Positions 32,923 through 57,400 of a stretch of 64,000 nucleotides of DNA are shown here, one piece after another. A program made the translations under genes and the position numbers. The notes beneath the pieces are model-generated. The model saw nothing but the letters and a program-made list of their open reading frames with translations, was not told the DNA's origin and did not search any database. Positions within the stretch are counted from its first letter, which is position 1. Each line of letters starts with the position of its first letter. Location of the stretch: contig MCFH01000007.1 of the NCBI GenBank assembly GCA_002104945.1, positions 868,001 through 932,000 on the forward strand. The letters run 5' to 3'. The DNA comes from Piromyces finnis finn (taxonomy: Eukaryota; Fungi; Neocallimastigomycota).

Positions 32923-35900
32923 ATTATCCTATTAATTATGTCCTTTTTTAGACAAAAAGATTAATTTTTATGTAAAGGTATCTTCTGTTATTTGTGTAAC
33001 AATTACCTTTCTTAGTAATTAAATTATAGTTAAAATTCATTTAATATTTTTAATTTAGGAATATTATATAATAAAGTTAATTAATAAAATAAATCTTAAT
33101 TATTAATAAAATATCATTGATTATTTTAATAATAAAATTCAATTAAACTTTTTCAAAGTATAAGTTATTATACTTAGGTATAGTAATAAAATATAATTAC
33201 TGACTATAAAGAATATTATAACTATATAATAAATTATAAAGAATTAATAGAGAAATGTACAAAAATTATAAAGATATAATTTTTATAATTTAAAAATCGA
33301 GTTAAACAACATTAAGGAATATAAATAGTTGATGGTTGAATTTCTATAATTCTGGCAAATTCAACTATTTAGGTTCATTCCTTAACAGAATGCCCTCCGT
33401 TAAAACTCAAGCTACTCCATAGCTGAGTTATATTTAACAATATTTTTAAAGTGTACATTTCTATTCATTAGTACACCAGTAGTTGGGTCAGCTAACACTA
33501 CTGTATTAAACTGTTTCTGAACCACTTTGAGAGGTCCCACAAAATAAGGCTCTAACTTTGCTCTACTAAAATTCCGTACTAGAACTAAGTCACCTATCTT
33601 TATTTTCTTAGCTTTACTCATACTTAACTTTTCCTCTCTTCTTGTAGACCAATATTTACTAGCCGTTTTGACATTCTCAGCAGCTTCCAAGGTCCACCGG
33701 TAGTGATTGATGAATTTTTCTAAAAGAATTTCATCGGAAGTTTTATTTTGATCTTTCGTAGGTCTGGCAGCAATATCAAAAGGTTGCTGATCCTCCCTAC
33801 CATAAACTAACTCAAAACTAGAATGGTTAGTTACTGTATTCTTGGATGTTCTTAGCGCCAAAAAAGCAGAAGGCAAAACTTCATCCCAATCCTTATTTTC
33901 TTTTCCTAACAGTCGCAGTAACTTTCCAATTTCCTTATTCCTATTCTCTGTTAGTCCGTTACTTTCTGGATGGTAGGGGACTGTGAATTTAACATATACA
34001 TCATATAAATCCAAAAATATCTTGGTCATATCAGAAGTAAACTGTGCTCCATTATCAGTAGTGATAATTTGGGGTATTCCATGACTTGCGAAAACGTTTA
34101 TTAAAAACTTTATTACATCTAAGGAAGTAATAGATTCTACCGCTTCGGCTTCTACCCACTTAATGAAATAGTCCACTGTAACTATTATATATTGTTTATT
34201 GTTCTTTGTCTTTGGTAGTGGTCCAATAATATCCAAACCTAAATGTACAAAGGGGCCTTCTACTTGTGTTGGACGGTTTTCTGTTGGCTCAGGATAAGGT
34301 TGGGGCCGATTTAACTGACATTTTTCACATTTACTAATAATCCTTTTGATGTCAGTTATCATATCATTCCAATAATAGCTCTTCTTCAGTCTTTGGTAAG
34401 TTTTATAGTAACCTTCATGTCCCACATTATGAGCTTGGTATATAAGTTTCACTTTTTCTTCTACAGTAGTAACCAACTGACGTAGGTTACTACCATCAAT
34501 AAAATAATCTTTTCCATCCACAGTGGTAAATTTTTCCTCAACAAAATCTTTAATAGCCTTAGACAATAATTCTTCATTACTGTTCTTTGTAATTTTGGTG
34601 ACCAATATTTTTCGTTCTTCTTTATTCTTCATTCTTGATAGTGCATCAGCTATAACATTATTCTTTCCTTTTTCATATTGAATATCAATACCTAGCTGAC
34701 TTACCGTTAGACACCAACGATTATGACGTGCACTATTATGTTCTTTATTTTTAAATAACCCTAAAAGTGGTTTATGGTCCGTATATACAGTAGTTACAAA
34801 TGGGTTTCCTAATATATACGGTTTTAATTTACTTACGCAAAAGAATAACGCGGCACCTTCTAACTCCGTTATTCCATAATTTCTCTCTGCCTTACTCAGA
34901 ATACGACTGATATAATGTACTGGGAGTTCCTTTCTAGTATTCTCATCCTCTTGAAGAAGAACACCTCCCACACCATCATATGAAGCATCAGTACGTATAA
35001 CAAAAGGCTTATCAAACTCCGGAAATTTTAAAATTGGAGCATTTATCAGTTTTTCTTTTAATATTGTAAATGCTTTTTCGTGTCTTTCTTCCCATTTATA
35101 TTGAACTTTCTTCTTTAGTAGTTCACATAAAGGTGCTGTTATTTGAGAGTACTTAGCTATAAAGTTCCTATAATATCCTACAGCACCCAGAAATGAACGT
35201 AGCTCATGGATATTCTTTGGAGCTTCCCACTTCTTTATAGCTTCTATTTTACTTTCCAATGGACTTAACCCTTTGGTGGAAAGTCTATGTCCTAGAACTT
35301 CCATTTCTTCCTGTACAAAGTGACATTTTTCAATGTTTATTTTAAGTTCATTTTCTTTAAATATTGATAATACTTTCCTTACATATGTTCTATATGTTCT
35401 TCTATGCTCTTAGAGTATATAAGAATGTCATCAATGAAATTATATACACATTCTCCTATTAAAGGAAATAATATTTTGTTCATTTCCCTTTGGAACGTGG
35501 CTGGGGCATTAGTTAACCCAAACGGCATAACCTTAAACTGGTAGTTCCCAAATTTGGTAGTAAAACTTGTAACTTCTGTACTTTCTTCATGCATGGATAT
35601 TTGGTGATATCCAGAGTATAAATCTAAAGTGGTAAAAATTTTTGCGCCGTTTAAACTATCAAATATTTCATCAATATATGGTAGTGAGTAGGAGTCTTTT
35701 TCTGTAACTTCGTTGACTTTCCTATAGTCAACATACATTCTCCATTTGCCATTATGTTTTGGAACAAGAACCACAGGAAAAGACCATTCAAAATAGGACG
35801 GCTCTATTAACCTTTTCTCTATTAGCTTAGTTAGTTCTTCCTTTAATATGTCTGACTTAAATTTAGTTAACCTATAAGCTCTTTGCTTAACAGGTTTAAT

Positions 35901-36127
35901 ACCAGCCTTTAAATTTATTTTGTGAGGTGCTAACTTAGAAGGTGTTTGTAATAACGCGAGAGACTCAGGTTAACACAATACTAATTAACTATTTTTTGTA
36001 TTAATAGTATATTTTATTAATAATTTGATTATTTAATATTATTAATACAAATTAACCTTAATACTAATTCTAAAGATTAAATTTACATGAATTCTATAAA
36101 TTATTTATATTTACTATTTATAAATAT

Positions 36128-36905
36128 TGTAAAAGTATAAAATTTAAAACAGATTTCATACTTAAAACAAAACAATTTTTATTAACACAAAAATAAAAAA
36201 ATAAAACATTAAATTTTTATTTTAAAAATCATTTTATTTAAAACTCTTAAAAATATTATTAACTATATAATAGTTAATAATTAAAAAATTGAAAATAACA
36301 ATTACATCGATTTAATAAACAAAAATTACATGTATTTATATTTTTTCATGATTATATTCTAATATATTATTCTATTTAAATAAACATATATTTAATATAA
36401 AATAAACAAAACTAATTTAATTAAATAATAAAATAACAGAACTAAACTAATTCATTATACTTTTAATTCAATTTGAGTAAACTCAAAATTGAATAAAGCC
36501 CATGTATTTTCTATGAATTAATTTAATATTATCAATACTATTCTTAATATATTTCCTATTGAAATATAAATAAATCTATTTTTAAAACTAAGTTAAAATT
36601 ATTAAACTATTCTAAATTTAAATAAAAAAGTATAATCTATTCTAAAATTAAATAAAAAGTATTTAAAAAATATTTTAATTATTTTAAATATTTGAAATAT
36701 TTAAATTTAATTAAAATTCTTTTATTCCTTAAATTTAAATATTTATCTTAATTTTAACGGAATTATTATAAAACAATTTATTATTAAATTATTCCATAAA
36801 ATTTATTCAAAAATTTTATAATAAGTTTTACTAAATATTAATTTATTATTTAATAATTAATAATTAATTATTAAATAATCTAAAGATATATCTTATATCT
36901 TTACA
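36128..36905 (-). mobile_element. Solo LTR-P (distant relative of LTR-A)
   Basis: 778 bp TG...CA, TSD AATAT; begins TGTAAAGATAT on the minus strand and retains GTAATTGTTAT. Confidence 0.88.
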
Positions 36906-37657
36906 AATATTCTTATTTAATAATTATGAATAAACATTATTCATATTGATTAGTAACTTCAATTATTTAAATAAAAAAGAAGAAATAGAAATAGACAAAT
37001 ATTATGGATTAAATATAGCGATTGCTATATTTAATCCATAATATAGAGAACCCGGAGTCGAACACATGACAAGTAGGTCAGTGTCCAACAACCTATCAAT
37101 ACGTTACATTACGTTAAGAAAATTTTTTTGTTATAATTAACTCTAATTAATATTAAATAATAAAATAATTTTTGTAGAAGAATCTTAATTATTAATAAAT
37201 TAGTTATTAGTAATAAATAGAAAAATTTAGAAGAATAAATAGTTTAGTTTAGTAAAAGAATTATAACACCTTCTCGAAGTAATATTAATTTTATAATCTT
37301 TATTATTAATTATTTTTATTTAATTAGTAATTATTAGTAATTATTATTAATAAAAAATTAAAATAATTGTAAAGCCTCAATTGAAGCTTTAGTATAAATA
37401 GTTAAAGAAAAAATAATTAGTTAAGCTTCAATTGAGAATTATTTTCAAATTCTATAAAAACCTTTTTTATTATTCTGACTTATAAAAAGTCCACTTTTCA
37501 ATGTTAATAAAAGATCAAATATAATTTTAAACTTAAATTATTAATAAAAGAGTCTTGTGTAAATTTTTTAAATAAATTTCTATTATTGTCTTTTCTAAAT
37601 TTTTATCAAACCTTATTTAATAATAAATAATTCAACCTATTCGCCAAATCCCTGATA

Positions 37658-37670
37658 ATAATTCTCAATT
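37658..37670 (+). promoter_or_regulatory. Family F self-priming PBS (ATAATTCTCAATT)
   Basis: Exact reverse complement of LTR 37430-37442, 37 nt after TATAAATA (37393). Confidence 0.8.
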
Positions 37671-37737
37671 CTATTTTAACAGAATACCTTGGATTATTAT
37701 AACTACTGTACATTTAACTATTCTTAGTAAGATCAAA

Positions 37738-40700
37738 ATGAGTCGCAATAATAATGACGTCTATGTAGCCTATGCTGCTGCCGATATGGAAGAACAAGAA
37801 CCTCTACTTGATGATTCAGGATCCGTTAGAGAAGAAGCTGAGCCAATGGATGCTGATGATAATATGAGACGTCCACCAAGATTTTTTGGAGATAGAGTTA
37901 TGGTGGAATCTTACATTGCTCATTGTAAAACAAACTTCGCAAATTATTCTCATCGCTTCTCTACCCCGGATAGGCAAGTAAGCTACCTTTTAAACAATAT
38001 GGGAGGACAAGCCTATCAATGGGCTAGTAAACATTTGGAAAGATATCCGTTACTTAAGCAAGATACTGAAGGATTCATCAAGAGAATCCGTAACACCTTT
38101 GGTGACCCCGATTTAGAATATCACTACCAACGTCAGTTCAGACGTTTACGCCAACATGGAATTGGTAATGTGTTAGATTACGTTAACGAATTCCGTCGTC
38201 TCGCTGTATTTATAGATACTGACGAAACCCTTTTAACTGACAACTTTTACCAAGGCTTAGATAGTCGTTTACAAGAAAGAATCGACAATATTTTCCCTCC
38301 TCCAGAAACCCTAGATGATCTTGCTCAACTTGCAGTCCGACTTGATCGTCATTTACTCCAACAAATGAATCACCGACAAAGAAAAAATAACCAGAGAAAT
38401 TACAAAACCCCTCCATCTAGGCCTATTCCAAATCATTCTCGTGAAACTCCAGTTGTTATCCGTAACCGAAACTCTAACTTTGAACGCTGTGGTTATTGTA
38501 AAAGAATTGGTCATAATGAAGATAATTGTTTTAAACGTCAAAACGACATTAGACACCAACAAGACCATCCTACCAATATTTCTACTATTAGTGCTGAAGC
38601 CCAAGAAGAAAAGACATGTCCTGTAGTTACTTTTGAATTAATCAATAATAGTAAAACTATACCTACCCCATTTTTAATCGACACTGGTGCTTTTGCCTGT
38701 TTCCTTGATAAGAACTATGCTGAGCGACATGGAATCCAATACACCCTAGATCCTGAGATTAAATTTGTCCATGGCATTAATGGAAAATCTACCGTGTTTG
38801 GAAAGACTTCAGAGATACCTATCCATTATCAAAACTACTATAGTTCTATCACATTCCTTGTTATTAACTTAAATAACTATTCAGGCATCATTGGGTACAA
38901 TTGGCTTAAGGGTAATAAAGCCACCTTTAACTTTAATAAGGAAATTATCTTAGAATTTCCGACATTAACTCCTAATTTAGATGAAGAACAATGTATTGAA
39001 GTCAATGTAATTAGGGACTTCACAGAACAAGATTTACTTTTTAGTGAAGAAGATAATAATCAAAAGGAACCCAGAATCCCAAATGAATTAATGGAAATTA
39101 AAGAGATTTTTGATGAAAAGCTACCAGAAGAATTACCACCACACAGAGTGTATGACTGCGCCATTGATTTAAAACCAAATTCAGTGCCATTCTATGGACC
39201 CTTATATTCGTTAACCCTTCAGGAACAAGAAACTTTAAAGGAATATATCGAAGAGAACTTGAGAAAAGGATTTATTAAGCCTTCTAAATCTCCTTATGGT
39301 GCTCCAGTATTATTTGTACCAAAGAAAGATGGTACGCTCCGCCTTTGTATTGACTATAGAAAACTTAATCAAGCCACAATTAGAAATTCATATCCGTTGC
39401 CATTAATCAAGGACTTACTCGACCGTGTTCAAGGATGCTCCTACTTTACTAAGCTAGATCTACCAGGTGCTTATAATTTAGTACGTATCAAGGATGGTGA
39501 TCAAGCAAAAACTGCTTTTCGTACTAGATTCGGCCACTTTGAATATGAAGTAATGCCCTTTGGTCTTACCAATGCTCCAGCCACATTTCAATATTTCCTT
39601 AACGATATTTTAACTCCTGTATTGGATAAATTCGCCTTCTCCTATATAGATGATATACTAATTTTCTCAAAAACACGTGAAGAACACATTAGTCATGTCA
39701 AGAAAGTCTTGAGAATATTACTTGATAATGGACTTTATTGTAAATTAAAAAAATGTGAATTTTTTAAATCCTCTGTAGAATTTCTTGGATATCAAATTTC
39801 TGATAAAGGTATATCAATGTGTCAAGACAAAGTAGCCGCCATTCGGGATTGGCCTCGTCCAAAAACCGTGAACGAAGTTCAGCAGTTTCTAGGTTTAGCA
39901 AATTTCTACCGCCGATTCATTTGCAATTTTTCAAAAATTGTTCAACCTTTGACAAAATTAACAAGAAAAGGTCAGGAATTTCACTGGAATAAAGAACAAG
40001 AAGCAGCCTTTACTATGCTCAAGGGTGCCTTTACCACCGACCCTATATTAATGATACCAGACCCTATTCAACCTTTTATAGTAGAAACCGATGCTAGCAA
40101 TTACGCTGTGGGAGCTGTTTTATCTCAATACGATAAGAATAATAAATTACACCCTTGTGCTTTCATGTCAAAAGGACTAAAAAATGCGGAAGTACGATAC
40201 GACATTTATGACAAAGAACTACTAGCCATAATCTCGGCCCTTAAAGAATGGCGTAATTATTTACAAGGATCTAAGGAACCATTCAAAATATTTTGTGACC
40301 ATAAGAACCTTAAATTTCCAAAGAAACCTGAAGTACTCTCCGACAGACAAATTCGTTGGTTTGAATTTCTTTCAAAGTTTAATTATGAAATTGTCTACCG
40401 CAGTGGAGCCTCAAACAAGAAAGCCGATATACTATCAAGACGACCTGATTTATTTATTGGACTTATTACTTCTTTTAACGATAATGAACTATTCTTTGAT
40501 GAAATCAAAAAACAATATCAATTTGATCTTGAAATTCAAAATATTATAAATTCAATTAAAGTAAAGGGTGAGTTTAATAAAAATTATGAAATTATTAACG
40601 ATATTCTTTATTATAATAATAGGATTTATTTGCCTTTAAACATGAGAATTCCCACTATTCAAAAATATCATGCTACGCCAGTTGCCGGTCATTTTGGTAC

Positions 40701-41679
40701 AAAGAAGACAGAAGAATTAATTACCAGATACTACTATTGGCCTAAGTTGCATGACGATGTTGATCTGTTTATCAAGAAATGTTTTATATGCGCCACTAGA
40801 AAAGAAACAACACATTCTCCATACGGACTGAACCAACTTACAGAAACTCCTTCTTTACCATGGACCTTCATCAACGTTGATTTTATTACAGACTTACCAG
40901 AATCGTCAGGCTATACTACCATTATGAATGTTGTTGACCAATTTAGCAAGATGATTCATTTAATTCCCGTTACTGGTACTCCCTCTGCCGAAGACGTTGC
41001 CAATTTGTTTCTTCAAAATATCTTCCGTATTCATGGCTTACCACATTCTATTACTTCTGATCGTGGAAGTCAATTTACTTCTCATTTTTGGAAAAAGCTT
41101 CTCAACCTACTCAAGATTGAATGCAAATATTCGACTGCTCATCATCACCAAAGCAATGGCCAAGTAGAAAGACTAAACGGTATTGTAACCCAAACACTTA
41201 GATGTTTTGCTCATGACGAACCTCATTTATGGTCCTATTATCTTCCTCTTGTGGAATTTTCTATTAATAATTCTATTAATGCTACTACGAAAAAGTCTCC
41301 TTTTGAAATTGTTTATGGATATAATCTTAGTTTTGATCCAGATCTTAGCTTTACTAGTGCTTCAAATCATGCGGAATTCACAACCCTTGACTGGAAAGTT
41401 CATTTTAATTCTATTTACAATAATATTAATTCAAGTAAACTTTTATATAAAGAAAACGCTGATAAACATCGCTCTGAAGGACCTTTATTTAAAATTGGTG
41501 ATTTCGTTTGGGTCAAACAAATTCCATCGTTGAAGAAATTGAAAAAATTTGCCTCCAGAAGAATTGGACCTTTTAAAATCTTGGAAATATTATCCCCTGT
41601 TACATTTAAGTTAGAACTCCCGCCTAATTCCAAAGCCTCAGATGTTGTGCATATAGAAAGACTTGAAAAATTCCTTTAG
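37738..41679 (+). CDS. gag-pol: Family F Gag-PR-RT-RH-IN polyprotein, no chromodomain
   Basis: CGYCKRIGHNEDNC, LIDTGA, YIDD, HATPVAGH..CFIC, DFITDL/SDRG/VERLN; ends after the GPF motif. Confidence 0.95.
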   Translation: MSRNNNDVYVAYAAADMEEQEPLLDDSGSVREEAEPMDADDNMRRPPRFFGDRVMVESYIAHCKTNFANYSHRFSTPDRQVSYLLNNMGGQAYQWASKHLERYPLLKQDTEGFIKRIRNTFGDPDLEYHYQRQFRRLRQHGIGNVLDYVNEFRRLAVFIDTDETLLTDNFYQGLDSRLQERIDNIFPPPETLDDLAQLAVRLDRHLLQQMNHRQRKNNQRNYKTPPSRPIPNHSRETPVVIRNRNSNFERCGYCKRIGHNEDNCFKRQNDIRHQQDHPTNISTISAEAQEEKTCPVVTFELINNSKTIPTPFLIDTGAFACFLDKNYAERHGIQYTLDPEIKFVHGINGKSTVFGKTSEIPIHYQNYYSSITFLVINLNNYSGIIGYNWLKGNKATFNFNKEIILEFPTLTPNLDEEQCIEVNVIRDFTEQDLLFSEEDNNQKEPRIPNELMEIKEIFDEKLPEELPPHRVYDCAIDLKPNSVPFYGPLYSLTLQEQETLKEYIEENLRKGFIKPSKSPYGAPVLFVPKKDGTLRLCIDYRKLNQATIRNSYPLPLIKDLLDRVQGCSYFTKLDLPGAYNLVRIKDGDQAKTAFRTRFGHFEYEVMPFGLTNAPATFQYFLNDILTPVLDKFAFSYIDDILIFSKTREEHISHVKKVLRILLDNGLYCKLKKCEFFKSSVEFLGYQISDKGISMCQDKVAAIRDWPRPKTVNEVQQFLGLANFYRRFICNFSKIVQPLTKLTRKGQEFHWNKEQEAAFTMLKGAFTTDPILMIPDPIQPFIVETDASNYAVGAVLSQYDKNNKLHPCAFMSKGLKNAEVRYDIYDKELLAIISALKEWRNYLQGSKEPFKIFCDHKNLKFPKKPEVLSDRQIRWFEFLSKFNYEIVYRSGASNKKADILSRRPDLFIGLITSFNDNELFFDEIKKQYQFDLEIQNIINSIKVKGEFNKNYEIINDILYYNNRIYLPLNMRIPTIQKYHATPVAGHFGTKKTEELITRYYYWPKLHDDVDLFIKKCFICATRKETTHSPYGLNQLTETPSLPWTFINVDFITDLPESSGYTTIMNVVDQFSKMIHLIPVTGTPSAEDVANLFLQNIFRIHGLPHSITSDRGSQFTSHFWKKLLNLLKIECKYSTAHHHQSNGQVERLNGIVTQTLRCFAHDEPHLWSYYLPLVEFSINNSINATTKKSPFEIVYGYNLSFDPDLSFTSASNHAEFTTLDWKVHFNSIYNNINSSKLLYKENADKHRSEGPLFKIGDFVWVKQIPSLKKLKKFASRRIGPFKILEILSPVTFKLELPPNSKASDVVHIERLEKFL

Positions 41680-43748
41680 ACGTCTGGAATCCGTCTTTGA
41701 GAAGGGACCTTATCAATACGTTACATTACGTTAAGAAAATTTTTTTGTTATAATTAACTCTAATTAATATTAAATAATAAAATAATTTTTGTAGAAGAAT
41801 CTTAATTATTAATAAATTAGTTATTAGTAATAAATAGAAAAATTTAGAAGAATAAATAGTTTAGTTTAGTAAAAGAATTATAACACCTTCTCGAAGTAAT
41901 ATTAATTTTATAATCTTTATTATTAATTATTTTTATTTAATTAGTAATTATTAGTAATTATTATTAATAAAAAATTAAAATAATTGTAAAGCCTCAATTG
42001 AAGCTTTAGTATAAATAGTTAAAGAAAAAATAATTAGTTAAGCTTCAATTGAGAATTATTTTCAAATTCTATAAAAACCTTTTTTATTATTCTGACTTAT
42101 AAAAAGTCCACTTTTCAATGTTAATAAAAGATCAAATATAATTTTAAACTTAAATTATTAATAAAAGAGTCTTGTGTAAATTTTTTAAATAAATTTCTAT
42201 TATTGTCTTTTCTAAATTTTTATCAAACCTTATTTAATAATAAATAATTCAACCTATTCGCCAAACCCCTGATACAACCTGACGGCGAAGCCAGCTTGGG
42301 GAACCCCGAAATACAATTTTGGTGAAAAGGTACAAAACCTTTATACGTTACAGTGTTAATTCTTCTGAAGACGTAGCAATGATATCTAAGTTCTCTTCTA
42401 ATAGCTGGAGTATTTCTTTTCGTTTGTCTTCTGGTATAGTTTTTAAAAATATTTCACTATGTATGTATTCATTAGGTGGCAGACCTTCAATGGATTTCAG
42501 ACTATTCAAATTTCCTTCTGAAATCTTCCTAATGGTACATACCACTTTTTCTTCATTATAATATTGATTATTTATTGGCAATATCTTTTCTGCTTCTCCA
42601 CGTTTATTTACTTTACATAAACTTTCACTAATTGGATCTATGTATAATAAATTATCTATTTGTGTTTTATAATTTATTAACATATCATAAAATGGTTCTT
42701 CCTTTTCAATTATCCGGAAGTCAACCACTATTTCTAGACTTCCTATTTGTACCGGTATACGTACTATAGCGCCTTCAGAGTAGTTATCATCTGTGGTAGC
42801 TAGTCTAATACGTCCGCTACTTATTCCTACTACATCATAATCCTTAGGTAATTTCTGGTAAAAGGAAGAAGTAATAACGTTTAAGTTACTACATGTGTCC
42901 ACTAATAATTTGCCTGGTACACCATCCACCATAGCGTCAACCATAACTATATCATCTTCTGATGTTTCCTGATTTTTACTGATATAGTCATGGTGAATAT
43001 TATTCAATAGGGTGGTTGTGGCTACTATATTATTTATAGTACCTGTAACTTTTGTTGGGGCTTTTTCCAGTTTTAATCCATGAGAAAGTTGGGTTCTTAT
43101 CTTTGGACACACATTAAACAGCTGTCCATATGTAATATCACACTTGGTAGTATTTAAGCTTTCAAAGATATCGTGGTCGCTAGTAGTACCCAACATTTGT
43201 ATTTTCCTGGAAATCTTTTCTGGCTTATTTTTATCTTTTTCCCTATCTCTCTTCATGTTAATTAAGGTGGGAAGTATTCCAGAACTTTTCTTCTTAAGAG
43301 TTTCTACCTCCTCTTCGTCTTCAGTGTCCGTATAAAGAATAACATCCATATCTTCTTCTTCTTTCTGGTTAGTAGTAGACATACTTCTTTGTTTATTTCT
43401 GACGCTTTTGCTTTTCACTTTCTCTTTTTCAATACTAGGTTGGCTCAATATAGATACGTCTAGTTGTTTCCTAGATTGAGAAGTTGTTCCTTTTTCCAGA
43501 TTCTCATTTCTCATATCATTTTCTTTTTTTTTCTAATAGCAGGTGTAGTTATAAGCTGAGGATTTTCTTTTAAGGTTCGTGACTTCCTTTTATTTGCAGT
43601 ATCATCTTCATCTTCATCATTTGCTTTCCTTCTTGCGGCGGCTATAACATGCTCATAGTTAGAGTACTCTTCTTCTTCGCATTCAGACAAGTTAGAATAT
43701 TTGAAATTTTCTAATTCTTCTTTCTCATTATCTTGATAATAATTAAGT

Positions 43749-43801
43749 GAAGCTATTTTTGAGGTACTGGGAGTGCTTCCCCTCCCATTACCTAGTTTAA
43801 A
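43749..43801 (-). promoter_or_regulatory. Predicted -1 ribosomal frameshift signal (U UUA AAC + H-type pseudoknot)
   Basis: Slippery heptamer in the gag frame directly before TAG; stems TGGGAG/CTCCCA and GAAGC/GCTTC; the -1 frame is open. Confidence 0.75.
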
Positions 43802-44679
43802 TGCTTTTCCCTAATTTTCTTTTTATTCTCTTCTACAATAGCATTTAACTTAGGACAATGGTACTGATAATGACCCTTTTCATTACAAAAGAAGCAAGTC
43901 TTGATAGAAAGGTTCTTCATTTTCTTAGTTAATTCCTCCATAGGATCCGTATTATTACTACTGGAATTATTAATTTGAAATTTATTGTTCTTCTCATAGA
44001 TATCCATCTTCCTTTCATTCTTGAATTTATTTCTTCTATCATGACGGGAAAAATTTGATATATCCTGGTTACTAACTCTGGAGCGGTTCCTCAAGTTCAG
44101 TCTGTCACCATCTTCGGCAAGTTTATATGCTACTGATAAGGAAGCCTCTTTAGCTCTTCGTACATTTTCCCAAGCCTTATAGTTAGGCTCAATAGAATCC
44201 AAGTAATCTTCTACATCAATTTTTCTCCTACGTTTCTTATCCAGTTTTACATATAAGGAGCGGTATCTAATGTTAAAATCTTTGACCTTCTCGTTTTTTC
44301 CTATTTTCATATCTCTAAGTTCTTTAAGGAGTTCTACCTGGTCTTCTTTAACTCCATAAAACTCTTCTAAGATATCAACGACTTCCTTAAGAGAAAGATA
44401 TTTTAAGTTTTGTACTTCATCCTCGTCTTCTGATTCACTATCCTCTTCATCCACCCTGTTTGGATTTAAGTCTTGGATAAGTTCGTTAGGTGTTCCTACT
44501 GTAGTAAATAAACACGTTAAGAATATCATCCTTGGACTCTTGATTTCTTGTAACATAGCCCAATACTTGAGTTGGCTATGCCAAGTCTTTATATCTAAAT
44601 TTTCTTCTGATAATCTTGTAACATGCTTGAGTTCTTTCATTAACTTAGCAAAATCGATGGATTCTGAAGAACTGGTCAT
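43792..44679 (-). CDS. gag: Element C Gag
   Basis: 295 aa with CFFCNEKGHYQYHC zinc knuckle, upstream of C pol. Confidence 0.85.
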   Translation of the reverse strand: MTSSSESIDFAKLMKELKHVTRLSEENLDIKTWHSQLKYWAMLQEIKSPRMIFLTCLFTTVGTPNELIQDLNPNRVDEEDSESEDEDEVQNLKYLSLKEVVDILEEFYGVKEDQVELLKELRDMKIGKNEKVKDFNIRYRSLYVKLDKKRRRKIDVEDYLDSIEPNYKAWENVRRAKEASLSVAYKLAEDGDRLNLRNRSRVSNQDISNFSRHDRRNKFKNERKMDIYEKNNKFQINNSSSNNTDPMEELTKKMKNLSIKTCFFCNEKGHYQYHCPKLNAIVEENKKKIREKHLN

Positions 44680-44996
44680 TTTTTTTTTTTTTTTTTTTTT
44701 TTTTTATGAATATTTTATTTTATTATTACTAATATTTTATTATTTATTAATACTGAAATTTTGATTTATTAATAATAATAAAATATTATATTTAATTTCA
44801 AATATAATATTTTTTAATCGAAAGTATATTAGAATATATTAAAAACATAAAATTTAAATTTTTTAACTCATTTAAATTTTTTTTTTTGTAATTTTACCTA
44901 AGATTAATCATGCCTTTATATATATATACTTTATTATTTATTATTTTTTATATATATTCTTTATCTTAATGTTTATCATTTTTAAATAGCATATTT

Positions 44997-45305
44997 TTAA
45001 CAATATTTCTTAAATTTACAGTAATCTCTGTCATCGAATTTATGCATACAGCAATTACATGCAGAAACTGGATAACAAACAGGTAAACCTCCATTATGAT
45101 AACATTCTATACAACTGTTCTTACTTCCAATGATTTGTTGGTGTAAAGTTTCTACATCTTTAGATAAAATTATTTTGCTTTCATTTTTAGATTCATCGAC
45201 AGTAGAAATGTTTTTATTTTCAGCATTGATATTTTCAGAATCAATACTCTTTGATAAAACGGCTAAAGTATTAACGGCAGCAAGTAATAAATAAGCTAAT
45301 TTCAT
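44997..45305 (-). CDS. Secreted cysteine-rich peptide precursor (signal peptide, acidic spacer, 8-Cys C-terminal domain)
   Basis: ATG-initiated, intronless 102-aa ORF; MKLAYLLLAAVNTLAVLS is signal-like; SCIEC...C...CNCC...C...C; coding-like composition within AT-rich flanks. Confidence 0.75.
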   Translation of the reverse strand: MKLAYLLLAAVNTLAVLSKSIDSENINAENKNISTVDESKNESKIILSKDVETLHQQIIGSKNSCIECYHNGGLPVCYPVSACNCCMHKFDDRDYCKFKKYC

Positions 45306-46530
45306 TTTGAGTAGATTTATTTAATTATTTTGATTTATTAATTGTTTTTGATATTTTATTTATTTATTTTTTTTTTAATTTATTTATTTATTTATTTGCT
45401 AGGTTTACTTAATTGTATTTTTCGTTTAGAATTTATTATCGTTATTAATTATTATTTTATTTGATTATAATTTTTACTTGTATCTTTTAATTTATATGTT
45501 TACTTAAATTTTTATCTTTTGTTAAATTAGTAATACTATGTTACAATGCTTCTTCAACTACATCAATTAACAATATTAATATATATTTCTTTTTTTTTTT
45601 ATTTTTAATTATTTTAATTGTGCAACAAAGCAATTAACTTTATTACTATTTTTAACACTCCCATAAAAAATTTTTAAGTCTAACTGTTAACAATTATTAT
45701 AATTAATATATGCTATTATAATAAAACTACTATGATATTCTTAATTATCCCCGATATCTCCACCATTAATTATGTTACGGTTCGAATAAGATATCATAAT
45801 TTTAAATAATAGTAATATTTTATTTTATTTTATTTTGTTTTGTTTTGTTTTATTTTATTTTATTTTTTTTTTTTATTTTATTTTATTTTTTTTTTTTTAT
45901 ATATTCAATTTTTAGTAATTTTTTTTAAAAACTTGCGTACATTTTGAAACTATCCATCTTTTGGAATTTAATGATTTTGGATAGCTAAAATTTTAAATTA
46001 ATTCCATTCGTAATATATGGATCATTCATTGTAACATATATTAATTAAGTCATTAATATATATTATGAATCATCTATTAATATTAGAACAGATAAATTTT
46101 TAATTTATATTTAATAAATTTTTAATTTGCTTTACCTTTAGTATTTTTAATTTCATATATTAACTAATAGACTTAAAGCATATAATAAATTTATATTATC
46201 CTATTAATTATGTCCTTTTTTAGACAAAAAGATTAATTTTTATGTAAAGGTATCTTCTGTTATTTGTGTAACAATTTATCAATACGTTACATTACGTTAA
46301 GTGAAATTTTTGTTATAATTAACTTTAATTAATAATAAATAATAAAATAATTTTTGTAGAAGAATCTTAATTATTAATAAATTAATTATTAGTAATAAAT
46401 AGAAAAATTTAGAAGAATAAATAGTTTAGTTTAGTAAAAGAATTATAACACCTTCTCGAAGTAATATTAATTGTAAAGATATCAAACGCCTCAGCTTGAT
46501 ATCTTTAATGTAACTTAAGCCACAAGTATT

Positions 46531-47960
46531 TGTAAAGTCGACACAAAAGAATAGATTAGGATATCTATTCTATTACAATAACACTAAAGATTTATATAAA
46601 ATTGTTTTGTTAAAAAAATATCTTTTATTATAATAGAAATTATATTAATAACAATTACATCGATAAAATGATGAAAAATATCTTCTATTTATATTTTTCC
46701 TAAATACATTTATATTATATTATAACTATTTATTTAAAATATATTATTATTTAAAATCTACACTAAAATCTTAATTATTAATAAATATTTAAACTATAAC
46801 TATTTTTAGTAAAATACAATTGGCAATTCAAATTAAGTACTATTCAATTTGAATATGTGCCCATGTATTATTGATATATTAAACATTTAATAATTATATA
46901 CTAGATGTCTATTTCTATTACAAAACAATACTAAAACTAGGGGTTTGAATTGAGAATTTTAATTTATTTGTTAAACATTAAGAATAAACTAATAATTTAT
47001 TTTGTTTTAAACTTTAATTATTAATAAATAAATTATGTCCCATTTTCTTTTTCTGTAATATAATTCGTGTAACTTAAACAATAATATTTATGGCTTAAGT
47101 TACATTAAAGATATCAATCTGTGGCGTTTGATATCTTTACAATCTCTCTCTCTAAGTCGAGCTCCTGCGAGATTAATTTATAAAGAATCCTTTCTCGAAG
47201 GAATTTCAATTACAAATGGTTGGTATCTATGCTTAATTAGATTGCCAACTTTATTCTTTCTTATTCTCATGGAGGAGTCATTCAACTTATGTTTTGACTT
47301 TTTAGAGTTTCTTTCGAACTCTTGTATTAATTGTTTGTCCGGGATCTGATCTTCAGAAACCCAAGTGGATTTGTCAAATCCTTTCCACGATAACTTATAA
47401 AATGTCTCACCATTAACAGATTTCATCTTCTCAATTTTTTCTGGAATTTTTTCAATTAAATCTGTGTTAAGATGAATATTTCTTTTCCTACTATTAGACC
47501 TATCTATAAACTCGTTTTCAAAGTATGGTTCTAACAATGAGACATGAAAGACTGGATGACATCTCATTGTCTTTGGGAGTTTCAATTTAAAAGCGAGAGA
47601 ACTAACTTTTTCAATTATTTCAAATGGACCAAGCATTTGAGGTGCTAATTTCTTCTTCAAGTTAGTTCCCGGAGAATCTTTCAATAACCATACCTTCTTT
47701 CCCACTTCAAATTCCGGGGGACTCATTCTTTTCATATCGGCATATTTCTTATATGTTTCTTTTGCTTTTTCTAAGCTTTCTTTTAATAATTTAAAGTTTT
47801 TATTCATATCAATTACTCTTTGTTCAGCTCTACTAGGTCTATCATTAGCCGGGATTTCCAAGCTGAACTTTGGATGAAAACCATAATTAGCAAAGAATGG
47901 GGATTGATTTATAGATTGCTGTAAAGTGTTATTATATGCAAATTCAGCAAATGGAATAAG
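46531..47960 (-). mobile_element. Family A copy 5, inverted 3' fragment (3' LTR 46531-47141)
   Basis: Inserted in the 5' LTR of copy 4; fused to copy 4 pol at an AAGAT microhomology (47958-62). Confidence 0.88.
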
Positions 47961-49536
47961 ATTTTTACTAAATTAGACCTTAAATCCGCTTATAATTTTG
48001 TTCGTATTAAAGAAGGTGATGAATACAAAACGGCTTTTCGTACTAGATATAGGCATTTTGAATATCTGGTTATGCCTTTTGGATTAAAGAATGCACCTGC
48101 AACTTTTCAACACTTTATTAACGATGTTCTTAGTGACTATTTAGACGATTTTGTTATCTCATATATTGATGATATTCTTATTTATTCTAATAATATCGAA
48201 GAACATCATGAGCATGTTAAAAAGGTACTTAAGAAACTACTTGAAAATAATCTTTATGTTAAATTAGAAAAATGTGAGTTTGATGTTGAGAAAACCACTT
48301 TTCTTGGTTATGTCATTTCAAAGAATGGATTGCAAATGGATGAAAATAAAGTTAAAGCAATTCTCGATTGGCCGGTTCCTAAGAATGTTAAAGAGGTTCA
48401 GTCTTTTATTGGTTTATGTAACTATTACAGAATTTTTATTAAAGACTTTGCTAAAATTGTAAACCCTCTTCACAAACTCACTAGAAAGAATGTTGCTTTT
48501 AACTGGGTGAAAGAAGATCAGGACGCTTTTATTTTATTAAAATCTCTGTTCACGTCAGCTCCTATTCTGAAACATGCGGATAGTAATAATCAATTTATTG
48601 TAGAAACTGATGCTAGTAATTATGCTGTCGGTGCTATTCTCTCTCAAGAATTTGATGGCAAATTACATCCTATTGCATTTCTTTCTAAAAGTTTGACGAG
48701 TTGTCAAAGAAACTATCCTATATATGACAAGGAACTTTTAGCTATTGTAGTTGCTCTTGAAGAATGGCGTCATTATTTAGAAGGTGCACGCCATCCGTTC
48801 ATAATTTATACTGATCACAAGAATTTAACATTTCCTAGAAAACCTGAAATGTTATCTCAGAAACAAATTAGATGGAATTTGTTCTTATCCAGATTTGATT
48901 TTAAACTCATTTATAAAGCTGGAAAGAAATCCGGTAAGCCTGATATCCTGTCTCGTAGAAGTGACCATTTAGAGAATAATATTAATTCTGATGTTTCTTG
49001 TCTTACTATTTCGTTTCATCATAGCGATAACAAACCGTTAATCGATTCTATTTTATTAGAACTTAAAAATGACGATTTGTTTAATTCTATTGTCCAATTT
49101 AAAATGAATGGTTCTACATGTAATTGTAACGAAATATTATAATAATAAACACACACACTCCAATGTATCAAATATATATATATATTTTTTAATAATGTTT
49201 ATTTATTAAATTTATTATTATAATACGACTAACTCGCTAGGTCAGTGTATTATCAAACTAAAGACGAAATAAAAAAACTAATTTTTATCAATTATTAATA
49301 AAAACACTAAAGAACTATTTTATCTTTCTTATTCTCTCTTTTATACATGAAAATTATTTTTTTTTAATACAATTTGATAAGTGAATTAATTACTTAATGA
49401 TTGGTTATAAAAATATAATTATGAAATTTTCATTAATCTAACCTTAATGATTTTCTAGTCTAACCCTTATCATTAGATATACTTCATTACAAGCTCCTCC
49501 TCTAAATTCGGATTCCAGACGAATTTATAAGCTAAT

Positions 49537-49566
<30 letters not shown>

Positions 49567-49571
<5 letters not shown>

Positions 49572-52500
49572 GGGTCTTGTTGAATTCTCTTAGCTTTGCT
49601 GGACAGTTCAGATTTTCTTCGGGTTCCCATGAGGCTTCTGAAATAGGATATCCTTTCCATTTGATCAAGTACTGAGTTTTGTTATAGCGTCTTCTTTTGT
49701 CCAGAATTTCTTCTACTTCGTATTCCTCCTCTTCGTTTATAATGACAGGTGGTGGAGGTTGAACTTTTCGGTTTGTACTTTTCCCTTCGAAGTAAGGCTC
49801 GAGAGATGATTTATGGAATACCGGATCAATCTTCATGTTACCAGGGAGTTTCAATTTGAATGAGACTTCTGATATTTGTTGTTCAATTTCATAGGGACCG
49901 AGTTTCCGAGGGGTGAATTTTTTATTTCCCTTAACTAAATTATTATTGATTAACCATACCTTTTCTCCTGGTTTGAATGACGGGCCTGGTTGTCTATGTC
50001 TATTGGCGAAATGTTCTTGTTTCTTTTGGGCTTCCGAAAGGTTTTTCTTGAGGGTGCTGATAATTTCTTTTAATTCTTTTGTGTATTCTTCAGCTCTTGG
50101 AACTTCACTTGTTGTTGGAATTGTTGGATTAAAATTAGGATGGAAACCATAGTTCAAGAAGAAGGGTGTTTGTTTTGCAGATTCTTGAACTGAATTATTG
50201 TAACTAAATTCAGCTAGGCTTAAGTATTCGATCCAGTTAGTGCCTTTGTAATTTGAGAAGCAGCGTAGATATTGTTCTACAACGGAGTTCACTCTCTCCG
50301 TCTGGCCATTGGATTGGTGGTGATAAGCAGAAGAGTATTTCAAATCAATCTTGAGGGTAGCAAAGAATTTCTTCCAAAACTTTGAAGTGAACTGAGAACC
50401 TTGGTCGAGAACAATGTCGGAGGGGCATCCATGAAGTTTGAAGACGTTGTTAATGAAAGCTTCGGCAGCACGTTCAGCAGTGGGAACTTTTTCAAGAGGG
50501 ATAAAGTGAGCCATTTTTGTCAATCGATCAATGACAACGAAGATACAGGTAAATCCACGAGAAGAGGGGAGGTCAGTGATAAAATCCATAGCAATGGAAG
50601 ACCAGGGACGTTCACCTAAAGGAAGAGTGGATAATAACCCGTAAGGTTTATGTCTAGAGGATTTCGAACGACAGCAGACCTCACAAGAACGGACATAGTC
50701 CTTAACATCCTGATACATTTTGGGCCACCAGTAGTTACGGGAAATCAAGGATAAAGTTTTTGAAATACCAAAATGGCCGGCAGCAGGGGAGTCATGACAA
50801 GAAGACAGAATTTCAACTCGGCAATCATTAGGAACATAGATTTTATCTTGGAAAAGGAGGACGTTGTTACTAAGTTTGTAGTCAGAAGAACAATTATCAT
50901 TGAGAAGTTGATTAGAAGTCTCAATGAAGAATTTGTCAAGTTTACAAGAGAGAGCAATTTTTTCAAGAAGAGAAGAAGGAGTGGATGAAGCAAAGCAGGA
51001 GCTGAAATTTTCGGGACGAAAGACAGAGTTATTAGAATCGGAATTGCAAGAGTGATCAAGATAGTCAGGTCTTCTTGACAAGGCATCGGTTTTCCCGTTC
51101 GAGGAACCAGGGCGATATTCAATGACAAAATCGAATTCAGCAAGGAAAAGGGACCATCTAATTAATCTCTGAGTCATCTTCTCCGGTTTCTTCTGAAAAA
51201 GGAGGTTTCTGTGGTCTGATATAATTTTGAAAGGATGATTCGCACCTTTCAAAAAATGTCTCCACACTTCTAAGGACGCGACGATAGCCAAAAGTTCTTT
51301 ATCATAGATAGGGTAGTTCTTCTCCGGGTTTGTAAGGGATCTAGAAAAGAACGCAACAGGGTGAAGAATATTGTCGAACTTGTTGACTTGAGACAATACA
51401 GCACCTATAGCGAAGTTACTTGCATCGGTTTCGACAACGAAAGGTAGGTCAACATCAGGATATGCAAGGATAGGCTGACTAATAAAATGCTTAACCAAAG
51501 CATCAAAAGCATCTTGAGCGGTATCGTTCCAAACGAAGGCGGTGTTCTTCTTGCAAAGTTGGTGGAGTGGGTGAGCATAGGCAGGAATAAATCTACGATA
51601 ATAGTTGGCTAAGCCTAGGAAAGATTGTAGTTCATGGACCGATTTAGGAGTCGGCCATTCCGCAATGGCTTTCACCTTATTAGGATCCATTCCGATACCA
51701 GAGGCAGAGATTCTATGACCAAGGAAGTCAAGACAAGGAGAGTCGAATAGACATTTTTCAAGTTTAGCGTACAGTCCGGCTTCTTCGAGTCTACGAAGGA
51801 CTTCATTGACGTGTTCATGATGTTCGGCTATATTATCAGAAAAAATGATAATATCGTCAATATACGAAAAGACGAATTTACCGATAATGCCTTCAAGAAC
51901 GTCGTTAATAAAATGTTGGAAGACTGCAGGAGCGTTCTTGAGACCGAAAGGCATTACCAGATATTCGAAATGGCCAAATTGACAGGTGAAGGCGGTCTTA
52001 TATTCATCGCCTTCTTTGATTCTTACCAAGTTATAGGCGGATCGAAGATCTAGCTTCGAGAACACCTAAGCTTTTCCTAGATGATCCAACATGTCTTGGA
52101 TCAATGGGAGAGGGTACGAGTTCCTAATGGTGATTTCGTTCAAGCGGCGGTAGTCGATACACATACGAAGTTCTCCACTCTTCTTCGGGACAAACAGAAC
52201 GGGAGCACCAGCTGGCGATTTGGATTTGCGGATAAACCCCTTTTTTAAATTTTCATTAATGGTTTCTTCTAATACCTTTGATTCTTTCTCAGTAAGTCGG
52301 TAGATTGGACCATAAAACAAGTTGCTATTTGGTCTCAGGTTGATCTCACAGTCGTACGGGCGATGAGGAGGGAGTTTATCAGCGAGCCTTTCCTCGAACA
52401 CTTTGGAGTGTTGAGAGTAGTGAATTGGAATTTGGGGTGACTCAACTTCAGGTTCTTCTAAACAAGTGAATACATTGAAAGGGTATTCAGGTGTATTTCC

Positions 52501-54377
52501 AACTGACATTTCGTCCTTCGATTGGTCTTCGAGTTCAGAAGTGGTAGAGCTAGCAGATTCTTTCCTTAAGCAATTTTCCTTACAGTATTCAGAATGATAG
52601 GAAACGTCCTTACTAGCAAAATTGATTGTCGGATTGTGAAGGGCTAGCCAATCAGAGCCAAGAATACAACAGTAAGAAGGCAATTCTACGACGTAAAATT
52701 GTAACTGGCATGAGTGATTCATGTGTTCCACAGTTATAGGCCAAGTCTGGCCGATAATCTTTTGGTGACCTCCGATACCTATAATTTGTGGGCATTTTAC
52801 TTTGGTAATTATAGGGATCTCATGGGCCTTAACAAAGGCGTGGTCTATCAAACAGAATTGTGAACCACTATCTAAGAGAACTTTAGTTCCGACAGATTTG
52901 TATGGAAGAACAACATCAACATCGATAACCGTTTGAGGTAAAGAGGAGTTATCCGAAAGTCGAGTGGATTTTTCTTGTTCATTCAAAACATGGACCCCAG
53001 CTGTAAAGATATCAAACGCCACAGATTGATATCTTTAATGTAACTTAAGCCATAAATATTATTGTTTAAGTTACACGAATTATATTACAGAAAAAGAAAA
53101 TGGGACATAATTTATTTATTAATAATTAAAGTTTAAAACAAAATAAATTATTAATTTATTCTTAATGTTTAACAATAAATTAAAATTCTCAATTCAAACC
53201 CCTAGTTTTAGTATTGTTTTGTAATAGAAATAGACATCTAGTATATAATTATTAAATGTTTAATATATCAATAATACATGGGCACATATTCAAATTGAAT
53301 AGTACTTAATTTGAATTGCCAATTGTATTTTACTAAAAAATAGTTATAGTTTAAATATTTATTAATAATTAAGATTTTAGTGTAGATTTTAAATAATAAT
53401 ATATAAGAAATAAATAGTTAAATATAATATAAATGTATTTAGGAAAAATATAAATAGAAGATATTTTTCATCATTTCATCGATGTAATTGTTATTAATAA
53501 AATTTCTATTATAATAAAAAATATTTTTAACAAAACAATTTTATTTTTATTTAATTTTTTGGTGTTATTGTAATAGAATAGATATCCTAATCTATTCTTT
53601 CTGAGTCAGCATTACACCAGCATTATTAGTATGGTTTTCCTTTTTGGTTCTAATAGGGCATTCAGATAATCGGTGACCAGGTTTACCACAATATAAGCAG
53701 AGATTCTCTTTCATTCGGCGGCTACGTTCTTCACTTGAAATGGGGCCAAAATTATTTTCCTTCTTGGGCTGAGTGGATTTACTTGTAGATCTTTCTGAGG
53801 AGCGGGATTGGAAGATTTGTTTAGAACGGAAACTTCTATTGGATCTTCTGTTTATTTCCTCTTGGTGGCATGCCAATCTACTTCCTATACGACTGGCTAT
53901 TGTTTGTAAGTTTATCAAGGTAGAAGGGCCAGGAAACATCTGAAGGATATGGGTGGCGATTCTATCGTCCAACCCATCAACAAAAGCATCCATCTTGGCT
54001 TGTTCATTCCAAGTGGATTCATCAGCATAGTAGTTAAATTCCTTGATATACTCTTGAGTATTGGATAGGCCATGTTGTTTGATCTTCTTGAGCTTTTGGT
54101 TGGCAGTATAGACCATATCCTGAAAACCAAAAGCAGCCTTCAGCTTTCCAACAAAGGCGCCATAATCCTGTAAGCAAGGATCATGGTTGTTAATCAAGGT
54201 AGCAGCCCAATTCATTGCATCCCCGTAGAGGCGACTAACGACGTAGAAGACCTTTTCTCCATCGTCCCTTCCTATTTCAGGATGGATCATAAAGATCATG
54301 TCCATTTTGGCTAAGAATCCCTTCAGGTAGCGACGGTTGCCATCAAAACCGTTCTTCAAATCAGCAGAGTTATCCAT
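49567..54377 (-). pseudogene. gag-pol: Family J gag-pol with chromodomain; disabled
   Basis: gag 53617-54377 rejoins PR across solo LTR-A; TAG in LGKA*VFSKLD near 52067; intact-looking chromodomain [11 protein letters not shown]. Confidence 0.92.
53002..53616 (+). mobile_element. Solo LTR-A inside element J
   Basis: TSD CCAGC. Confidence 0.95.
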
Positions 54378-54437
54378 AAAAAAAAATTAGAAGTAAGCAA
54401 ATAAACGAGGCACTGAGGTAGCGATCTTTTTTCTTAG

Positions 54438-54448
54438 AGTGTTTTTAT
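54438..54448 (-). promoter_or_regulatory. Family J self-priming PBS (ATAAAAACACT)
   Basis: Abuts the LTR-terminal CA; complementary to AGTGTTTTTAT in LTR-J (14976-14986), 37 nt after TATAAAA (14939). Confidence 0.75.
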
Positions 54449-57400
54449 TGTATTAATACAATTTGATAAGTGAATTAATTACTTAATGATTGGTTATAAA
54501 AATATAATTATGAAATTTTCATTAATCTAACCTTAATGATTTTCTAGTCTAACCCTTATCATTAGATATACTTCATTACAGTAATGCACCTATTAAAAAT
54601 ATTGATAAAGTTATTATTGATAATGAAGGATTTTTATTATATAATAATCTTATTTATGTTCCTAAATCTCTTAGGACAAGAGTTTTGGAACTTCATCATG
54701 ATTCTGTTGCTGCTGGTCATTTCGGTATTAAGATAACCACTGAACTGATTTCCAGAAACTTTTGGTGGCCAAGGTTTCATTCAGACGTTAAATCTTTTAT
54801 CAAATCTTGCGTGACTTGTTGCAAATCCAAAGTCCCCAGACATAAGCCTTATGGATTGTTATCCCCTTTGGACACTCCCAGTAGGCCCTGGTCTGATATT
54901 TCTATTGATTTTATTGTTGATCTTCCTAAGTCCAGAGATATGACAACTCTCATTGTTGTTGTCGATAGATTTACTAAATTTGCTCACGCCATTCCTTTAC
55001 GTTGTCTTCCTACTGCTTCGATTGCTGCTGATGCTTTTATTGCTAATGTCTTCCGTTTGTATGGTCTTCCTGATTCCATCATTTCTGATAGAGGCTCGCA
55101 ATTTACTTCTGACTTTTGGTCAAGACTTTGTGACCTTCTTAATATCAATCATTCATTATCAACTGCTAACCATCCGCAGACAGATGGTCAAACGGAGAGG
55201 GTGAACGGCATATTAGAACAATATTTCCGTTGTTTTATAAATAAAAAGCAGAATAACTGGGTTGATCTTATCCCATTTGCTGAATTTGCATATAATAATA
55301 CTTTACAACAATCTATAAATCAATCCCCATTCTTTGCTAATTATGGTTTTCATCCAAAGTTCAGCTTAGAAATTCCAGCTAATGATAGACCTAGTAGAGC
55401 TGAACAAAGAGTAATTGATATGAATGAAAACTTTAAATTATTAAAAGAAAATTTAGAAAAAGCTAAGGAAACATATAAGAAATATGCCGATATGAAAAGA
55501 ATGATTCCTCCAGAGTTCGAAATGGGAAAGAAGGTATGGTTATTGAAAGATTCTCCTGGAACCAACTTAAAGAAAAAATTAGCACCTCAAATGCTTGGTC
55601 CATTTGAAATAATTGAAAAAGTTAGTTCTCTCGCTTTTAAATTGAAACTTCCAAAGACAATGAGATGTCATCCAGTTTTTCATGTCTCATTGTTAGAACC
55701 ATACTTTGAAAACGAGTTTAACGATAGGTCTAATCGTAGGAAGAGAAATATTCACCTTAACACAGATTTGATTGAAAAAATCCCAGAGAAAATTGAGAAG
55801 ATGAAATCTGTTAATGGTGAAACATTTTATAAGTTATCGTGGAAAGGATTTGACAAATCCACCTGGATTTCTGAAGATCAGATTCCAGATAAACAATTAG
55901 TACAAGAGTTTGAAAGAAACTCTAAAAAGTCAAAACATAAGTCAAACGACACCTCCATGAAAATTAAAAAGAATAAAGTTGGTAATCTAATCAAGCACAG
56001 ATACCAACCATTTGTAATTGAAATTCCTTCGAGAAAAGATTCCCTATAAATTAATCTCGCAGGAGCTCGACTTAGAGAGAGAGATTGTAAAGATATCAAA
56101 CGCCTCAGCTTGATATCTTTAATGTAACTTAAGCCACAAGTATTATTGTTTAAGTTACACAATTTATATTACAGAAAAAGAAAATGAGACATAATTTATT
56201 TATTAATAATTAAAGTTTGAAACAAAATAAATTATTAATTTATTTTTAATGTTTTACAAATAAATTAAATTTCTCAATTTAATTTCTTAGTTTTAGAATT
56301 GTTTTTTGATAGAAAAAGATGAATAGTATATAAATAATAAATGATTAATATATAAATAATACATGGGCACATATTCAAATTAAATAGTATTTGATTTGAA
56401 TTGCCTATTTAATTTTACTAAAATAGTTATAGTTTAAATATTTATTAATAATTAAGATTTTAGTGTAGGTTTTAAATAATAATATATTTTAAATAAATAG
56501 TTATAATATAATATAAATGTATTTAGGAAAAATATAAATAGAAAATATTTTTCATCATTTTATCAATGTAATTGTTATTAATAAAATTTCTATTATAATA
56601 AAAGATATTTTATAAAACAATTTTTTATTTTATTTTTCAAATTTTTGTGTTATTGTAATAGAATAGATATCCTAATCTATTCTTTCTGTGTCAGCATTAC
56701 ATTAATTTTATAATTTTTATTATTAATTATTTTTATTTAATTAGTAATTATTAGTAATTATTGTTAATAAAAAATTAAAATAATTGTAAAGCCTCAATTG
56801 AAGCTTTAGTATAAATAGTTAAAGAAAAAATAATTAGTTAAGCTTCAATTGAGAATTATTTTCAATTTTATATAAAACCTTTTATTATCTGACTTATAAA
56901 AAAGTCCACTTTTAAATGTTAATAAAAAATCAAATTTAATTCTAAATTCAAATTATTAATAAAAAACTCTTAAATAAATTTTTAATAAATTTTTACTATT
57001 GTCTTTTCTAAAATTTTTATCAAACTTTATTTAATAATAAAATAATTCAACCTATTCTACAAACTCCTGATACAATTACCTTTCTTAGTAATTAAATTAT
57101 AGTTAAAATTCATTTAATATTTTTAATTTAGGAATATTATATAATAAAGTTAATTAATAAAATAAATCTTAATTATTAATAAAATATCATTGATTATTTT
57201 AATAATAAAATTCAATTAAACTTTTTCAAAGTATAAGTTATTATACTTAGGTATAGTAATAAAATATAATTACTGACTATAAAGAATATTATAACTATAT
57301 AATAAATTATAAAGAATTAATAGAGAAATGTACAAAAATTATAAAGATATAATTTTTATAATTTAAAAATCGAGTTAAACAACATTAAGGAATATAAATA

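Follow-up and report, generated by a model that had tools for sequence, protein, structure and literature searches.

The window, by which we mean the whole stretch of 64,000 nucleotides analysed here (positions 868,001 to 932,000 of contig MCFH01000007.1 in the Piromyces finnis assembly GCA_002104945.1), is a dense nest of Ty3/gypsy elements with 11-17% GC between the coding stretches; the parent record, MCFH00000000, represents P. finnis Pirfi3, which comes from horse (PMC6712302). On the minus strand lies one such element, here called C, whose parts are listed in Table 1 together with those of a small peptide gene, and whose affiliation is given by the zinc knuckle of its gag and by the pol order PR-RT-RH-INT. 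The gag reading frame is intact and 39-50% identical to the gag of related elements; the databases hold no closer match than 50% identity, and the exact C gag sequence corresponds to no called gene on record. Its pol is disrupted by a single frameshift and a single nested insertion; the aligned stretches hold zero in-frame stops. When the two pol pieces were compared separately, with the nests left in place, they matched the intact pol (1307 aa) of a related element from a metagenome at 45-82% identity, and since residue 466 of that relative is matched on either side of the insertion, both pieces belong to one gene and, with gag, to one element. The intact-looking element X that sits inside the insertion has LTRs with 1 difference in 564 (99.8%), an 80-nt leader and an uninterrupted gag-PR-RT-RH-INT frame.

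Table 1. Features of element C, of the peptide gene in its leader and of the nested insertions (positions in the window).
Feature	Positions	Strand	Description
C 3' LTR copy, 465 nt	32923..33387	-	probably truncated from about 887 nt; abuts truncated A-type RT
Gap from pol stop to 3' LTR	33388..33411	-	short purine-rich (PPT-like) run beside the LTR, from sequence
C pol, PR-RT-RH-INT, broken	33412..43514	-	one frameshift and one 6.4-kb nested insertion
Insertion in C pol, LTR-like unit Y	35947..42352	.	TGTAA...TTACA termini, TSD GTGTT; carries element X and one more insert
Element X, Ty3/gypsy, intact-looking	37094..42274	+	564-bp LTRs, TSD CAACC, 1313-aa gag-pol ORF
C gag, intact 295-aa ORF	43792..44679	-	CX2CX4HX4C zinc knuckle; from ORF and comparison
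Leader, peptide stop to gag ATG, 317 nt	44680..44996	-	8.8% GC
Peptide gene (protein P0001)	44997-45305	-	single exon, 102-aa prepropeptide
C-terminal 42-aa domain of P0001	45000..45125	-	residues 61-102; 8 Cys, net charge +2
Signal-peptide-like residues 1-20 of P0001	45246..45305	-	hydrophobicity heuristic; conserved in P0034
Leader, PBS to peptide ATG, 442 nt	45306..45747	-	14% GC, 2 upstream ATGs
tRNA-type PBS, 18-mer starting TGG	45748..45765	-	unique in the window; after 7-nt spacer 45766-45772
C 5' LTR, 3'-side part	45773..46276	-	46195-46276 exact repeat of 3' copy 32923-33004
Nest splitting the C 5' LTR, 10.8 kb	46277..57072	+	X-type solo LTR interrupted by rearranged pieces of A-type and other gypsy elements
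C 5' LTR, 5'-side part	57073..57460	-	57072-57460 matches 32999-33387, 1 mismatch in 389 bp

As the preliminary description had stated, C has no target-site duplication (TSD): the flanks at its outer ends differ, which a truncated 3' LTR would explain. Beyond that LTR copy, an A-type element running from 30026 breaks off within its RT at 32922/3; this RT continues from 47958, the two parts overlapping by 20 bp (32904-32923 and 47958-47977), inside the nest that splits the C 5' LTR, where an inverted A-type INT-plus-LTR piece (46530-47962) adjoins it. The break reflects either recombination between copies or an assembly problem. The 82-bp repeat shared by the two sides of C, which an ungapped repeat comparison had led us to consider as a piece of A-type RT, was rejected as such, the alignment ending A-type homology at 32922/3. 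Two further observations concern the coding content of the window. A second element of the C lineage (61561-63996, plus strand), with a pol 46-50% identical to C and its relatives, runs off the window end; and a 295-aa frame at 6196-7083 (minus strand) shares its length with C gag by coincidence, being unrelated to it and giving a faint copia-type RT match (E 0.007).

The upstream end of C is more intricate. The two LTR copies differ at one of 465 positions (32923-33387 against 46195-46276 plus 57072-57460), in keeping with the earlier claim of about one difference, although the repeat ends at 46195 and not at 46211. The 5' LTR that had been placed from about 46211 onward is likewise real, but it is contiguous there for 82 bp, and its other 388 bp stand at 57073-57460 behind the 10.8-kb nest. 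We had predicted the remainder beyond the adjoining X-type LTR fragment, and it was found there, at 57072-57460. That fragment belongs to a solo LTR (46277-46472 plus 56701-57072, TSD CAATT), which is of the same family as element X (92-96% identical). The segment 45773-46194 has no counterpart in the 3' copy, and the simplest reading is that the C LTR measures about 887 nt and that its 3' copy was cut after 465 nt; alternatively, the LTR measures 465 nt and is separated from the primer-binding site (PBS) by an additional segment of 422 nt. We also considered, and rejected, an insertion of 430 nt lying between two copies of a duplicated 11-nt motif, for the 3' LTR copy shares nine bases beyond that motif. 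This 11-nt motif occurs twice on the minus strand, at 46201-46211 near the end of the LTR repeat and at 45766-45776 across the true LTR end and spacer, and could be an old internal duplication or the trace of a recombination. LTR pairs were sought in metagenome relatives (L002-L007, L021, L027 and L046) and none were found, probably because repeats collapse in assembly.

The PBS-like segment described earlier as following the LTR repeat has no TGG and is not conserved, and the PBS lies instead 429 nt further in, at the position given in Table 1. An identical 18-mer stands upstream of gag in eight related loci (L007, L015, L021, L024, L027, L030, L033, L046), the last six of which are AT-rich metagenome loci found by scanning for the PBS 18-mer; in L007 and L015 the PBS is preceded, upstream of a C-like gag, by an LTR-end block resembling that of C. 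A tRNA scan found no tRNA gene in the window, and Rfam searches of the leader and the window likewise gave nothing.

Between this PBS and gag lies the peptide gene. It has the PBS upstream and gag downstream, shares their strand and so falls within the internal region of C; under either reading of the LTR it is downstream of the PBS. The leader, counted from the PBS, is 1068 nt long and not 1.5 kb as first described, and since leaders of 483-1765 nt occur in the nine relatives examined, a long leader is normal for this lineage and the gene does not amount to a large net insertion. These facts argue against the caveat raised at the outset that a host gene might simply lie between two C fragments. 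Under that explanation the LTR/PBS side and the gag-pol side would come from different C copies or fragments with a host gene caught between them, and the missing TSD, the truncated 3' LTR copy, the illegitimate junctions in the surrounding nest and the failure of 45773-46194 to match the 3' LTR copy are what it would lead one to expect. However, it needs two breakpoints that spared the LTR end, the PBS, a complete gag, the common orientation and a spacing usual for the lineage; a terminal inverted repeat, matching at 7 of 8 positions, is formed by the LTR start (57460) and the LTR end (45773), and the LTR copies retain their single difference in 465. We therefore regard a composite origin as quite unlikely.

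The leader holds one more conspicuous feature, a run of 26 A residues (44680-44705) that directly abuts the gag ATG. We considered it as the tail of a captured mRNA and rejected it as evidence, because the related locus L046, which has no ORF in its leader, carries a run of 30 A residues 3 nt from its gag ATG, and A-type elements carry a run of 29 in theirs (22288-22316). Runs of 26-30 A residues at or near the start of gag thus recur in unrelated gypsy families of these fungi, where they may have a role in translation downstream of a long leader.

That the peptide frame is a gene at all is supported from several sides. The preliminary description of an intact, intronless frame of 102 aa on the same strand as C gag (ATG 44679) was borne out on checking the sequence and its ORFs, and so was the layout of its product: a signal-like N-terminus, an acidic spacer and eight cysteines in the arrangement C-x2-C-x8-C-x5-C-x-CC-x9-C-x5-C. 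The signal was judged by a hydrophobicity heuristic, residues 3-17 having a mean Kyte-Doolittle value of 2.19 and small residues standing at positions 18 and 20, after the hydrophobic core; residues 21-60 form the acidic spacer, with a net charge of -4 and two N-glycosylation sequons. A TATA-like motif near 45495 is present as described, but is uninformative in DNA that is there 86% A+T. The frame itself is a GC island (27.8% against 8.8-14% in its flanks) in which GC falls by codon position in the manner of coding DNA (34/32/17.5%), and in the deposited annotation (NCBI, UniRef) it is the sole called gene within 10 kb on either side. Could it nevertheless be a chance frame without a product? 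A frame of 102 codons was reached in 10 of 2000 shuffles of the 1.5-kb stretch, often enough to give this idea some footing while still favoring a gene, and neither Pfam nor PDB sequences or folds hold a match. On the other hand, the codon-position pattern, the annotated gene model and a homologue aligning over the full length with conserved cysteines all speak against chance, which we consider very improbable indeed. Thus 44997-45305 is a genuine gene for a small cysteine-rich peptide, predicted to be secreted.

The peptide, P0001, has very little company. Its exact sequence occurs once among about 15 billion proteins, a singleton on contig MCFH01000007.1 of GCA_002104945.1, and an exhaustive HMMER search yielded a single true relative, P0034, which is 100 aa long, aligns over its whole length at 36% identity (E 6e-4) and is accompanied by two near-identical variants, whereas the matches P0032 and P0033 were rejected as repeat-protein artefacts. 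The putative signal peptide and seven cysteines are conserved between P0001 and P0034. The three P0034 variants differ by 1-2 codons, all non-synonymous and too few to interpret. Word-based and profile searches and a metagenome back-translation scan gave no relatives beyond the P0034 cluster, and the exhaustive HMMER search found no annotated paralogue across the annotated genomes. Pfam, searched up to E 10, returned nothing save a match to RXLR confined to the signal peptide (E 0.11), and the PDB sequences returned nothing below E 0.8. Structure prediction with AF2 gave a poor model of the full-length protein (pLDDT 43); for the 42-aa domain the best model reached pLDDT 78.6, with five models spanning 39 to 79, and was predicted as a beta-hairpin with two short helices. 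A Foldseek search of PDB with this domain model, read in the light of a confidence of 39-79 across the five models, had a best E of 6.3. On sequence grounds, P0001 and its homologue constitute a tiny orphan cysteine-rich family of anaerobic gut fungi.

The defensin-, toxin- or effector-like function first proposed therefore finds no support in Pfam, PDB sequences or folds. Defensin-like, knottin-like and fungal antifungal proteins are built on a similar plan, in which a signal peptide and an acidic pro-region precede a short, basic C-terminal domain whose cysteines are even in number; P0001 is alike in architecture only, with no profile or structure-sequence match and no fold match at E below 6. 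Any function we might ascribe to the peptide would be deduced from that architecture.

The surroundings of the homologue are instructive. The contigs bearing P0034 (L011-L013, three samples) extend up to 1565 nt upstream of it at 12-15% GC, and this upstream DNA holds no PBS, LTR end, gag, GC island or TE ORF; nor do these contigs have anything in common with the gag-bearing loci. They stop 130-220 nt past the stop codon of the homologue (one of them within a long run of A residues), so that "free-standing" describes the view upstream. The longest, L011, has long A runs at both ends (L011:1-35 and L011:2015-2090).

The relatives of C tell the complementary story. In the nine relatives that share the PBS and have a gag like that of C, the leaders contain no sense ORF of at least 40 aa, and tblastn of P0001 and its homologue against these nine gave no match. 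A further branch, seen in four contigs from four samples (L002-L005), has a 6.16-kb gag-pol unit that is 99% identical among these contigs and a leader of about 1.06 kb without the PBS 18-mer; it may use another primer, or its contigs may begin downstream of the PBS. GC at third codon positions (GC3) is 17.5% in the peptide ORF, 26-34% in C gag and pol, 11.9% in the homologue and 11.7% in the C-like ORF at 61561-63996.

Taken together, these findings lead us to favor, at somewhat better than an even chance, the explanation that a host-type gene was acquired, either by the C lineage or by the C copy present here. Its host-type nature is suggested by the free-standing homologue; that it was acquired and is not ancestral is indicated by the nine ORF-free leaders and the failing tblastn matches, and we infer that the acquisition took place after C had diverged from these relatives. 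The homologue contigs, with no PBS, GC island or TE ORF upstream, argue in the same direction, as does, weakly, the difference in GC3 between the peptide ORF and C gag/pol. Several points weigh on the other side. One copy is known, which fits a cargo of the whole family and a one-off capture alike; no donor was found in P. finnis, the protein searches having given no annotated paralogue; the edges of any captured segment are undefinable because the leaders of the relatives cannot be aligned beyond the PBS block; and the transfer between element and host could have run in either direction. The region is, moreover, rearranged (no TSD, a truncated 3' LTR, the break in A-type RT), leaving room for misassembly or recombination, and the A run beside gag is shared with the ORF-free L046.

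How might the gene have come in? Acquisition could have proceeded through template switching by reverse transcriptase onto a cellular transcript, or through insertion or replacement within the leader at the DNA level. Today it would behave as an ordinary resident gene, read from a minus-strand transcript starting in U5 or the leader, or in LTR pieces further upstream; its product would be translated as the first long ORF past the PBS, two ATGs preceding it, and enter the secretory path, where removal of the acidic pro-region would leave a mildly basic 42-residue peptide with four disulfides. The C copy found here is dead and rearranged, and presumably cannot carry the gene elsewhere by itself.

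The opposite view, and the one from which this study set out, is that the gene is cargo of C: that the whole C family carries and has multiplied it, so that a retroelement spreads a secreted peptide. One part of this view stands, for the gene is internal and co-oriented, while the nine ORF-free leaders and the free-standing homologue tell against the other. That the ORF is undamaged although C pol has suffered a frameshift and a nested insertion was confirmed as well, the LTR copies are 99.8% identical, as expected of a young insertion, and extra ORFs upstream of gag exist elsewhere, as ORF0 of Retrosat2, RIRE3 and RIRE8 (PMC3485330). Against it count that the protein is a singleton, for which exhaustive HMMER revealed no paralogue in annotated genomes, that the databases hold no close C gag, that the ORF is absent from nine relatives, and that neither a second copy of C nor one of its leader occurs within the 64 kb of TE-rich sequence in the window. 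With single copies of both C and the peptide gene within reach, no evidence supports a spread of the gene by the element, and a family-wide cargo seems to us rather unlikely; that the family acquired an entire secreted-peptide gene within its leader and distributed it over several loci we rate as unlikely to a slightly greater degree. Were the latter true, retrotransposition would set the copy number, and perhaps the dosage, of a secreted competitive or signalling peptide.

A further possibility reverses the relation between element and homologue. The gene might be an accessory gene that this lineage has had since its ancestors, or might have arisen de novo as a leader ORF, and in either case an element would be the source of the free-standing homologue; in this lineage the leaders reach 1.8 kb, and ORFs could arise in them. 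Yet leader ORFs are absent from all nine relatives, the DNA around the homologue bears no sign of PBS, LTR end or gag, and the conservation of the putative signal peptide and cysteine framework at 36% identity points to an older protein family. An origin within the element is accordingly, in our judgement, decidedly improbable.

Acquisition of a host-type gene, the explanation we prefer, is of a kind already known from Bs1 and, as regards position, from the ORF0 of Retrosat2, and is new for anaerobic fungi. The capture of host genes by LTR elements of plants is documented (PMC13317346). In Bs1-type capture, for which template switching or read-through is accepted as the route, a host-type coding sequence stands between LTRs, as it probably does in C. 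In Bs1 and in most plant examples, however, the captured sequences are gene fragments that often replace gag-pol, whereas C has a complete small gene in the leader between PBS and gag, beside a full gag-pol, in an anaerobic gut fungus. The ORF0 of Retrosat2, RIRE3 and RIRE8 resembles the present case as a co-oriented extra ORF between 5' LTR and gag; it is large and non-secretory, and is conserved among family members as well as between species (PMC3485330). The leader ORF of C, in contrast, encodes 102 aa, is predicted to be secretory, and is absent from the nine relatives examined.

Capture of host sequence by LTR retrotransposons has been documented mainly in plants and mostly as fragments, and a fungal Ty3/gypsy element with an intact, annotated secretory gene between its PBS and gag would provide a clean example of the pick-up of a whole small gene. 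If other copies were found to carry it, they would show how the repertoires of secreted peptides could expand in anaerobic gut fungi. More practically, the block formed by LTR end and PBS offers a simple marker by which this retroelement lineage can be recognised in gut metagenomes. Within that block, a conserved CGAACC segment lies among the closing bases of U5 beside the PBS, in C (45773-45786, minus strand) as well as in L007 (L007:100-118), L015 (L015:290-308), L019, L027 and L030. The usual sequence of the tRNA T-arm is GGTTCG, to which CGAACC is complementary, and this complementarity suggests an extended contact with the primer.
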